From Paraphysomonas bandaiensis (lineage: Eukaryota > Protista > Chrysophyceae), in NCBI GenBank assembly GCA_965644295.1, contig CBFFRP010000362.1:321217-385216 (forward strand): DNA of 64,000 nucleotides, in the 5' to 3' direction. A model generated the notes under the pieces. That model worked only from the letters and a program-made list of their open reading frames with translations. It did no database searches and had not been told where the DNA came from. A program made the position numbers and the translations under genes. Shown in pieces: positions 871 through 14,542 of the stretch (positions are counted from its first letter, which is position 1; every line of letters begins with the position of its first letter).

Positions 871-886
871 GGTGTTTCTTAACACC
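871..886 (+). promoter_or_regulatory. Histone 3' stem-loop (H1)
   Basis: GGTGTT-TCTT-AACACC: 6-bp stem, 4-nt loop, GG/CC base, U-A top pair, 47 nt after the stop codon. Confidence 0.9.
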
Positions 887-1121
887 ACCTCTTTCAGGAA
901 TATTATTTGGTGTGTGCAATTGAGGATGGGCTCTGGAAAAGCGCGTTGATAGTTCCAATGCATTTTTCTATTCTAATATAGCCTCGTATAATTTTGTGTA
1001 CTGTACGTCGTTGTGAATAAGTATATAGTAAACGGGACTAAGAATGAATATTTACGTTGTACAAATAACAAGTACTAGTAATTTAATCTACTGATGTGTT
1101 TACTTGCTGATTAAAGGTACT

Positions 1122-1188
1122 AATATATTGCAATACTATTGTTGGGCCGGTTTAAAAGCGCTATCTAACAATAGTATTGCAATATATT
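1122..1188. repeat. Perfect 22-bp inverted repeat with 23-nt spacer
   Basis: AATATATTGCAATACTATTGTT (1122-1143) and AACAATAGTATTGCAATATATT (1167-1188). Confidence 0.9.
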
Positions 1189-1422
1189 TTCCCCTTACCC
1201 TGTGCGAAACAATGTAGAGCCCAACAGAACGATAGCGATATGATAATCAGAGACTTTGTACGACAAGAACCTGTTTTGTCTGTAAACTCGCAAGTGGTGA
1301 AGAAAAGCTTCCCCACATCCCCAAACTAAAAGTCTCTCAAAGACTTTCTTGAAGCCTTCCTCACAACAATGACCACTTACACTGCTGCTCGCTCTGTCCT
1401 TTGTCCTTGCCAGCATCAAAGG

Positions 1423-1464
1423 AAGCGAATTCTTTCTTTAAACGAGAGTAATAAAGCGTGATGA
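1423..1464 (+). repeat. Short dispersed repeat (second copy 55892-55940)
   Basis: AAGCGAATTCTTTC...GAGAG..ATAAAGCGTGATGA is present in both copies. Confidence 0.6.
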
Positions 1465-2306
1465 ATATCATTAGCACATAATAGAATCATCTATGTAGTA
1501 AATTAAAGACATCAAGCAGTAAATTGTTAAAGACATGGAAGATGAATAATATGGCATTCGTTTAATTTATTATATCATTGTAAGCTTTTCCCGAACGTGT
1601 ATATTAATATATGTCGTACATAAAACAATGGAAACGTTGATTGTATACACTATTAAGATTCACTAATTTTCGTATACGTCTTAACACATATATACTCGTG
1701 AATGCAACATGATACAATGAAAAACTGAATTATCATCAGACTTTATAAGATACATCACTGTACATGATTGGTTCTGATGTCTTGCTGTTCTACTATTAGG
1801 TTTTATTACACGACCGTTCTCATGTAATAATCAGACATTCTTATATATTAGGTTTATTCCTTAGTAGTGAATGTCTAATTATTAGCAATATAGGCGTGTA
1901 AGAGTTAGAGCTGATGTAGCAAAAAAACAATTTAACTCACTAGTGCTTAACTCTGATAACCTACTATTTGGCGCTACGAGAGCTGCTTGTGCGTCACCGA
2001 AAGCACAAAGATGCAACCACTTTCGTTCTCTGTCTTTAAGGTGAACAGCCCGGATGCTTGATTTCAGTAGGCCAATACCACAGATGCCCCTGAGGTGGTC
2101 CCATTCACGGATGCGTGTTTATTGTTTATTCACTTCAATTGTAAAGTAAGTTGTTTCTCACTAACCTATTTTCCAACTCTCTTATATTTGTCACTGTTTT
2201 TAGGCGCAAAAATACGACAAAGCTACCTAAGAGTTCTAGAGTTTCTTCGTAGAATAGAGGTGGTGGTGATACTATATCTTAATTCTTTATAGCAAGATAT
2301 CAAATA

Positions 2307-2409
2307 CCGTAATACCATTAATTGTCATTAATGACACGTTAACGAGTGACAATCATCCCGCAATTGTAATTATAATGCCAATACTATTAATGGTTAGTAC
2401 TTGGCCCTG
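2307..2409 (-). mobile_element. Degenerate end of a hAT-like MITE family (related to 55725-55846)
   Basis: The minus strand begins CAGGGCC...TAACCATTAATAGTATTGGCATTATAATT, matching the left end of the MITE at 55725. Confidence 0.6.
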
Positions 2410-2570
2410 AAATACACTACATGCTCCAGACTGAATTGCTACTACGTAGTTGTACTGTAAAGATAATGTAAAAACAAGTATTGAGTATTGATAAGAAAAT
2501 GACAATTATACAGAATACCACTTCTCATACGCAAACTACAGGTAATATTACAATAACAATATCATATTTA

Positions 2571-13066: not shown

Positions 13067-13082
13067 GGTGTTGAAAAACACC
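13067..13082 (-). promoter_or_regulatory. Histone 3' stem-loop (H3)
   Basis: Minus strand GGTGTT-TTTC-AACACC, 23 nt after the stop codon. Confidence 0.9.
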
Positions 13083-13105
13083 AATTGTTTGTAGAAGAAG
13101 AACGC

Positions 13106-13516
13106 TTAGCTTCTCTCGCCACGGATGCGGCGGGCAAGCTGAATGTCCTTAGGCATAATAGTGACACGCTTAGCGTGGATGGCGCAAAGGTTAGTGTCCT
13201 CAAATAGACCCACAAGGTAACTCTCAGCGGCCTCCTGCAGAGCAAGGACAGCAGATCCCTGGAATCTCAGATCAGTCTTGAAGTCCTGGGCAATCTCACG
13301 GACAAGCCTCTGGAAAGGAAGCTTGCGGATGAGGAGCTCAGTAGATTTCTGGTAGCGTCTGATCTCTCGAAGAGCGACTGTTCCAGGACGATATCTGTGA
13401 GGCTTCTTCACACCTCCAGTGGCGGGGGCGGACTTACGAGCTGCCTTGGTGGCGAGCTGCTTTCTTGGGGCCTTGCCACCAGTTGATTTACGAGCAGTTT
13501 GCTTAGTACGAGCCAT
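13106..13516 (-). CDS. H3: Histone H3 (intronless)
   Basis: Full-length canonical [22 protein letters not shown]...IRGERS. Confidence 0.99.
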
Positions 13517-13816
13517 TTTGTTGTTGTTTTATTTAATCACAATTGATTGTTTAAATATGACTATATAACGCAATTTATATATATTCAAAAAGCCTTTGAT
13601 CATGATGACTCTTCAAGATACTTGAGCATCTCGTTCCCCCTCCAACTGTAATATGTAACTTCGACGGTCTGAAGATGCAACTTTTTTCCCTACCATTTTC
13701 GTGTAGCTGTTCAAGATACGTTTTTTTATCCCAACAGCTTTGGAAGCATGTTTCTATATATGGTCTCACTTCTACATCACAATTACTTAATACATAATTG
13801 ATATCAGATTACAAAT
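13517..13816. promoter_or_regulatory. Bidirectional H3/H4 promoter
   Basis: 300-bp divergent spacer with TATATA-like boxes near each gene and RAGATRC-core motifs shared with the H1 promoter. Confidence 0.8.
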
Positions 13817-14128
13817 ATGGCTGGTCGTGGAAAAGGTGGAAAGGGATTGGGAAAGGGTGGTGCTAAGCGCCATCGTAAGGTGTTGAGAGATAACATCCAG
13901 GGTATCACTAAGCCCGCTATTCGTCGTCTTGCTCGCAGAGGTGGCGTCAAGCGCATCAGCGGACTCATCTACGAGGAGACTCGTGGTGTCCTTAAGGTGT
14001 TCCTTGAGAATGTTATCAGAGACGCTGTCACCTACACTGAGCATGCTCGCAGAAAGACTGTCACTGCTATGGATGTCGTCTATGCCCTCAAGAGACAGGG
14101 ACGCACTCTTTATGGCTTTGGTGGTTAA
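13817..14128 (+). CDS. H4: Histone H4 (intronless)
   Basis: [43 protein letters not shown]...TLYGFGG. Confidence 0.99.
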
Positions 14129-14165
14129 ATTCGCAAATCTTAATATTGCTTATTCTACAAACATT

Positions 14166-14181
14166 GGTGTTTTTCAACACC
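14166..14181 (+). promoter_or_regulatory. Histone 3' stem-loop (H4)
   Basis: GGTGTT-TTTC-AACACC, 37 nt after the stop codon. Confidence 0.9.
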
Positions 14182-14542
14182 ATTATTCTATGGAATTGTG
14201 TAATTTTCTTTATTGGTTGTAGGATTTCTTTATTAAATTGCTCACGTAGTGGAAGTATATATGAGATAATGTCTTCACTTGATAAATGTAGTGAGCAAGC
14301 AATGAAATCTCAGTAACGTGAGAAGTGTACTCTCATGTACGAAGTAAATTGTATATGGAGCACTGTTCTGGAAGCATGAACCATATTAACGACTCTAATA
14401 CTTGCGAGGAAGAAGCAACAGGCCCTATTATGAGCAGCTGTTATTCCCAAGTCAAATATGGACGAACAGTTCGTATTGGCACTTGATATTAATAGACTTG
14501 GATATGCAGATATCTACGGAATATCATGTATAGAAAGTCTTC

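Follow-up and report, generated by a model that had tools for sequence, protein, structure and literature searches.

In animals, the 3′ signal of histone mRNAs is one in which a stem-loop bound by SLBP is followed by a histone downstream element (HDE) that has co-evolved with a small nuclear RNA (snRNA), U7. In Caenorhabditis elegans, where stem-loop and SLBP are present and no U7 is known, the pathway reportedly relies on small RNAs and an Argonaute; this species offers an earlier example of stem-loop histone mRNAs whose processing involves no recognisable U7 snRNA. The system considered here consists of a 3′ hairpin and a short downstream element, GGA, found behind the H1, H3 and H4 genes in a 64,000-nucleotide stretch of Paraphysomonas bandaiensis DNA (the window, G000:C362:321217-385216; the assembly measures 62.6 Mb). 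The genome contains no fewer than seven silicon transporter loci, in line with the earlier attribution of the DNA to a stramenopile by a sequence-only reading.

SLBP and stem-loops also occur outside animals, as in the histone genes of Chlamydomonas/Volvox, Dictyostelium and Physarum, where no bona fide U7 is known. Physarum possesses SLBP, LSm10 and LSm11, but no U7 (PMC8600027). According to a 2026 preprint (10.64898/2026.10.14.759114), SLBP, stem-loops, LSM10, LSM11 and FLASH are widespread outside animals, stramenopiles included, and the sole non-animal U7-like RNA is found in Rozella; in that work, the HDE was scored only as AAA or AAGA words and diatoms are unmentioned. The view that U7-type processing is essentially metazoan, adopted in the sequence-only reading, is therefore under revision, since both sources report LSM10/LSM11 homologues outside animals. 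These homologues, together with FLASH, have reopened the question of whether the two-part, ruler-like signal and its U7 guide are an animal invention or an ancient eukaryotic feature. In both protist surveys (PMC8600027; 10.64898/2026.10.14.759114), the HDE is described as loosely purine-rich or as AAA/AAGA words, in contrast to the position-locked GGA of the present genome. Among the papers open to searching, none deals with both diatoms and either the histone stem-loop or SLBP, and none mentions a position-locked GGA element.

Hairpin and downstream element of histone genes

The downstream element is tied to its spacing from the hairpin, strand-specific, confined to histone genes and conserved across species. 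The pattern GGTGTT-N4-AACACC occurs three times in the window, against 0.02 copies expected from shuffles, and each copy follows a histone gene. In all three genes, GGAAT begins at +11, counted from the end of the stem, and the 10-nt spacers between stem and GGAAT all differ (ACCTCTTTCA, ACATATTAAT and ATTATTCTAT). These hairpins, the position of GGAAT, their coordinates and some additional letters shared by the H3 and H4 flanks had already been pointed out in the sequence-only reading, and the window sequence agrees with it in each of these respects.

Throughout the assembly, the hairpin pattern has 38 matches, compared with six for a reversed control pattern. All 38 are located 21-47 nt past the stop codon of a histone gene (nine H3, eight H4, eight H2A, nine H2B, two H2A.Z-like and two H1) and read GGTGTT-TNTN-AACACC, so that every loop is U-N-U-N. 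GGA starts at +10, +11 or +12 at each of the 38 sites; many of the histone copies are recent duplicates with identical flanks, and when each distinct flank is counted once, GGA starts in this interval in 23/23. The H2A.Z-like genes at G000:C348:80817 (L017) and C395:118610 (L020) possess the complete hairpin and GGA signal. In the genome census, the exact hairpin was not found at four divergent H3-family genes (on contigs C139, C297, C78 and C318; H3 variants or CenH3) or at several other histone-fold genes. This distribution is reminiscent of animals, in which replication-dependent histone genes are set apart from variant ones. No exact hairpin lies near a duplicated canonical H3 copy, C9:22744-23121, whose Pfam score equals that of the other copies.

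A look-up of proteins identical to the H4 of this genome led to ten environmental contigs, on which the neighbouring genes are unrelated. The 3′ flanks of H4 and H3 on these contigs have the hairpin and GGA at +10 to +12 in 18/18 cases, again with unrelated spacers; after removal of duplicates, 14/14 distinct flanks from other species retain GGA in this interval. Together with the 23 distinct flanks of the present genome, these make a pooled set of 37, which falls into 35 independent groups when sorted by identity at +16 to +44 (on average, two flanks are 30% identical there). All 37/37 have GGA in the interval, with its first base at +11 in 21 flanks, +10 in nine and +12 in seven; with a background of 3.3% for a three-position GGA window, the naive binomial P is ~1e-55.

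The position profile of the pooled flanks shows A at -4 and at -3 (33/37 each), A at +1, C at +2, C or A at +3, a U-rich section at +5 to +7 and an absence of G at +1 to +4. These positions are followed by G at +11, G at +12, R at +13 and A at +14; there are no conserved positions past +15. UGGA is present in 30/37 flanks and GGAA in 24/37. The exact pentamer GGAAT stands at +11 in nine flanks, and the other 28 depart from the fixed form proposed in the sequence-only reading, so that the locked spacing holds in a wider form and the full word does not. The invariant part is a core of 3-5 nt with a wobble of one nucleotide in either direction, and the fixed-distance element is a short GGA(A) at +10 to +14, not a long purine run.

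Sister lineages with the same hairpin

A scan of metagenomes with the hairpin pattern gave 80 loci, mostly chance matches in bacterial sequences, of which about seven adjoin histone genes; this set was extended by protein look-ups. A second lineage (L116, L220-L228; including contig BAAHQB010000027.1 of NCBI assembly GCA_054601695.1), whose H4 begins MSGRGK and has two differences from the H4 of the present genome, contains the hairpin 52-92 nt past the stop codon. The stem of this lineage shows compensatory variants (GGTGGA/TCCACC and GGTTTT/AAAACC) and its 3′ flank is ACACU. None of its 12 flanks has GGA at +10 to +12; instead, they contain a purine run, AAA(A/G)A(A/G)AA, at +14 to +21, with AGAA beginning at +16 to +18 in 9/12, and this run resembles the classical animal HDE. 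In a third lineage (L047, L121, L229-L237), represented by environmental contigs with H2A and H2B, the same hairpin is followed by GUA at +11 to +13 in 3/3 distinct flanks, one base off the GGA of the present genome.

The three groups have in common the hairpin type with its ACAC/ACC flank on histone genes and a downstream slot, and differ in the word that occupies the slot. Since GGA, the purine run and GUA all stand behind an unchanged hairpin, the slot is conserved and the word lineage-specific. By analogy with the animal HDE and U7, such a pattern would be expected if the element and a dedicated reader evolve together.

Protein machinery and resemblance to the animal signal

The SLBP homologue that the sequence-only reading had suggested looking for is encoded in the genome. 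The SLBP RNA-binding domain (PF15247) is located at G000:C72:78561-78824 in two exons split by an intron, which score 41.3 and 49.9 bits with a cut-off of 27. The second half of the domain aligns to the solved Drosophila and human SLBP structures (4tux, 4l8r; E 7e-8) and keeps the HPRTP and W.R.LH..D motifs. At a predicted length of about 150 aa, the protein is apparently small. The genome also contains about 21 loci with an LSM domain, compared with 15 canonical Sm/LSm genes. Among them, C433:254129-254389 and C115:14473-14724 show insertions within the Sm fold.

The signal shares with that of animals a 6-bp stem with a GG...CC base, a 4-nt loop whose first and third bases are U, an A-rich 5′ flank, an AC(C/A) 3′ flank, a location 20-50 nt past the stop codon and possession of SLBP. 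As in animals, it is confined to multi-copy canonical histone genes and H1, and a second element follows at a fixed distance. It differs in the stem, which is GGUGUU and not GGCUCU, in the 3-5-nt core GGA(A) starting at +10 to +12, in the very small size of the putative SLBP, in the inclusion of H2A.Z genes and in that U7 was not found; here, moreover, the cleavage is a predicted one.

Proposed processing mechanism

The hairpin and GGA probably constitute a two-part 3′-processing signal of stem-loop histone genes, which would work like the animal stem-loop and HDE. The first part would be the 16-nt hairpin with its A-rich 5′ flank and ACC 3′ flank, bound by the small SLBP homologue. The second part would be (U)GGA(A), with GGA beginning 10-12 nt past the stem, preceded by a G-poor, U-rich spacer and followed by a GU/U-rich tract. 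A second factor seated on GGA may, together with SLBP, position an endonuclease of the CPSF73 type, and a cut inside the spacer would produce an mRNA ending at the hairpin; both the cleavage between the two parts and the reader of GGA are what we infer from this arrangement. GGA(A) is best read as the lineage-specific counterpart of the animal HDE.

Several observations weigh against a signal of the animal type. The conserved core measures only 3-5 nt and lies nearer the stem than the animal HDE, whose AAAGAG-type run sits further out. The signal is also present on the H2A.Z genes, unlike in animals, where H2A.Z mRNA is polyadenylated. Of the words that make up the H3-H4 stretch, 7-9% are present in metatranscriptome runs selected for polyA, which could represent some polyadenylated transcripts or coding sequence of relatives. 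Finally, a search of the whole genome with the Rfam U7 model gave a best score of 18.3 bits (E 4.5), with a cut-off of 34, a weak negative result since U7 evolves fast (PMC5054213).

With respect to the reader of GGA, a sequence-specific protein is tentatively placed slightly ahead of a U7-like small nuclear ribonucleoprotein (snRNP) with a short UUCC guide, because of the brevity of the core and because the search for a guide RNA found none. The U7-like snRNP is kept alive as an alternative by the homology of the system as a whole and by the lineage-specific exchange of motifs. In practical terms, the two-part signal defines histone terminators for expression constructs, and poly(A)-selected transcriptomes may under-count histone mRNAs. 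It also replaces the description ‘purine-rich’ with a sharp rule, namely a position-locked GGA whose slot is filled by another word in sister lineages while the hairpin is unchanged. This rule provides a complementarity key for finding a non-animal U7 and makes the question of its age experimentally testable.

Search for a guide RNA and the snRNA promoter

The foremost alternative to a protein reader, possible but somewhat less likely, is a U7-like snRNA in a particle of the Sm/Lsm10/Lsm11 type. A 5′ UUCC(A) of this RNA would pair with (U)GGA(A), and the RNA would thereby measure the distance to the cleavage site. The hairpin, SLBP and the downstream slot look homologous to the animal system, the second lineage has an HDE-like purine-rich run in its slot, LSM10 and LSM11 are reported in stramenopiles and the number of LSM-domain loci in this genome exceeds the canonical set. 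On the other hand, conservation over 3-5 nt is short for a guide duplex, and the flanks show no signal of extended complementarity.

The search for a guide was extended through the promoter of the spliceosomal snRNA genes. Four U1 genes (C123:465552, C199:479889, C281:109132 and C291:131328), four U2 genes (C8:31929 and three more), one U4 gene (C406:267564) and three U5 genes (C371:116452, C441:11075 and C210:96152) were located; these U1-U5 loci are L162-L173. The U1, U2, U4 and U5 genes share a promoter composed of (A)TATTTTGGGTAAAT and, 12 nt past its GGG, YWTATAWA, with transcription beginning 23-24 nt past the TATA box; beyond the transcript end there is a C/A-rich 3′ box (CACCCAC or CACACAC). 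To our knowledge, no diatom snRNA promoter has been described. The promoter pattern has 68 matches in the genome, compared with 13 for the control, and none inside the window. The 68 matches comprise the known snRNAs, U3, a repeat of about 35-40 copies and three kinds of orphan RNA, designated X (three genes), Y and Z. None of the orphan RNAs behind this promoter has an accessible UUCCA followed by an Sm site, and the U7-analogous guide proposed in the sequence-only reading was thus recovered neither by the Rfam model nor among these transcripts.

Orphan RNA Y (L215; promoter at G000:C416:86354-86380, + strand) is about 72 nt long, is without a match in Rfam and has a terminal hairpin, AAGGCUGUAGGCCUU, with a CACUCAC box behind it. 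Its size and layout are U7-like. As a guide, however, Y does not distinguish itself: the energy of its duplexes with the +5 to +24 windows equals that with shuffled targets, and its AAAUCCA needs U after GGA, where the rule is A.

Orphan family X consists of L205 (C268:10203, - strand), L212 (C389:26678, + strand) and L217 (C445:52387, - strand), about 95-108 nt in length. Its members vary over the 15-30 nt of the 5′ end and have two conserved hairpins as well as GUCUCCAAAAAAA; Rfam contains no match for the family. Its pairing through GUCUCCAAAAAAA is only slightly better than with shuffled targets (-10.5 to -11.0 vs -9.2 kcal/mol). The UCUCCA of the family suits just the minority of flanks with GGAG and is placed inside a predicted hairpin.

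A relaxed promoter combined with TTCCA has one match, G000:C281:76594-76654 (+ strand). At the predicted transcript start of this candidate, 24 nt past the promoter, stands UUGCUAUUCCA, which is complementary to UGGAAUA, the commonest form of the histone element; however, the reversed control also gives one match, and there is no Sm-like RAUWU word within 30 nt past TTCCA. The pattern ATTCCA..AATWT..CACNCAC was also tried (47 matches vs 16 for the control); none of its matches is linked to the promoter.

It is unlikely, though a degree less so than the explanation considered in the next section, that this genome and, judging from the sister lineages, a wider stramenopile-type group possess a functional U7-like snRNP, its guide having drifted so as to read UGGAA. 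If it does, RNA-guided cleavage of histone 3′ ends is older than animals, and the GGA, GUA and AAAGAAA variants mark the co-evolution of guide and target. The GGA rule can be used here as a search key, namely UUCCA near the 5′ end of an Sm-class RNA of 55-110 nt, for which C281:76594 is a first candidate locus.

Three U3 small nucleolar RNA genes (L206, C288:375900; L209, C359:4568; L216, C423:162736; Rfam scores 58-59 bits) are located behind the snRNA-type promoter, and the promoter of orphan RNA Z (L211, C378:114646) is of the same type. The U3 genes and RNA Z end in a T run, a hint that termination is of the polymerase III type, as it is in plant U3. A dispersed repeat of about 35-40 copies (L176-L204, L208 and L219; for example, C26:59911, C127:146506 and C437:79434) also opens with this promoter, its transcript beginning (A)GTTRTCTCGGTGTAAGATCGGT; the repeat could be an element, mobile or retroposed, that uses the snRNA promoter.

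Context of the RNA 3′ end

Downstream of the element, T makes up 0.38-0.45 of the bases at +21 to +100, and the flanks contain a GU/U-rich tract with words such as TTTGT, TGTTT, GTTTG and TGTAT (for example, at window positions 14202-14281). The tract is strand-specific, as GTTTG occurs 12 times on the sense strand and not once on the opposite strand. It resembles the downstream element of a cleavage site. AATAAA is present within 150 nt in 0/23 flanks, and neither AATAAA nor ATTAAA was found within this distance in 22/23.

These features bear on a further alternative, which is improbable: that the hairpin and GGA form an internal module of the 3′ untranslated region in mRNAs polyadenylated further downstream, where SLBP and a partner would control stability or translation. 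The module stands on the H2A.Z genes, whose animal counterparts yield polyadenylated mRNA, and the histone words in the polyA-selected runs would fit such transcripts, unless these small shares come from relatives. Stem-loops combined with polyadenylation are reported in Physarum (PMC8600027) and in early-diverging fungi. The near-absence of the two hexamers argues against this explanation, as does the lack of a second conserved block past +15; the GU/U-rich tract, moreover, directly follows the element, as would be expected 3′ of a cleavage site.

Shared ancestry or gene conversion of histone 3′ flanks, or a signal acting at the DNA level, with no function in RNA, is essentially excluded because, despite the letters shared by the H3 and H4 flanks of the window (TTCTACAAACA 5′ of the stem and the extension ATGGAATT) and the identical flanks of recent duplicates, GGA is present in all 35 independent flanks with their unrelated spacers and low identity, is retained beyond this species and in five classes of histone, and is always on the sense strand, within one nucleotide of its distance from an RNA hairpin that has compensatory stem changes in other lineages.

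Features of the window

The histone genes of the window and the parts of their 3′ signals are listed in Table 1.

Table 1. Histone genes, hairpins and downstream elements in the window (positions counted from its first letter).
Feature	Position	Strand	Remarks
H1 linker histone gene	exons 333-461 and 515-823; GT-AG intron 462-514; TAA 821-823	+	From sequence reading; C-terminal open reading frame lysine-rich
H1 3′ stem-loop, GGTGTT-TCTT-AACACC	871-886	+	6-bp stem, 4-nt loop, U at loop positions 1 and 3; 47 nt past the stop codon
H1 spacer, ACCTCTTTCA	887-896	+	ACC at +1 to +3 conserved, remainder U-rich, G absent; presumed cleavage zone
H1 downstream element, GGAAT	897-901	+	GGA core at +11 to +13
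Histone H3 gene	13106-13516	-	136 codons and stop
H3 3′ stem-loop, GGTGTT-TTTC-AACACC	13067-13082	-	23 nt past the stop codon
H3 downstream element, GGAAT	13056-13052	-	At +11; longer form ATGGAATT
Histone H4 gene	13817-14128	+	103 codons and stop; divergent pair with H3
H4 3′ stem-loop, GGTGTT-TTTC-AACACC	14166-14181	+	37 nt past the stop codon
H4 downstream element, GGAAT	14192-14196	+	At +11; longer form ATGGAATT

Over the whole window, TGGAATT shows no enrichment (11 matches vs 11.6 expected), so the motif is position-specific and not a repeat. A scan of the window with Rfam at gathering level gave no matches. In a permissive search, the H4 hairpin matches Rfam RF00032 (Histone3) with 23.6 bits (E 9e-5), below the gathering score of 34, and on this sub-threshold match it is probably a divergent relative of the animal element.

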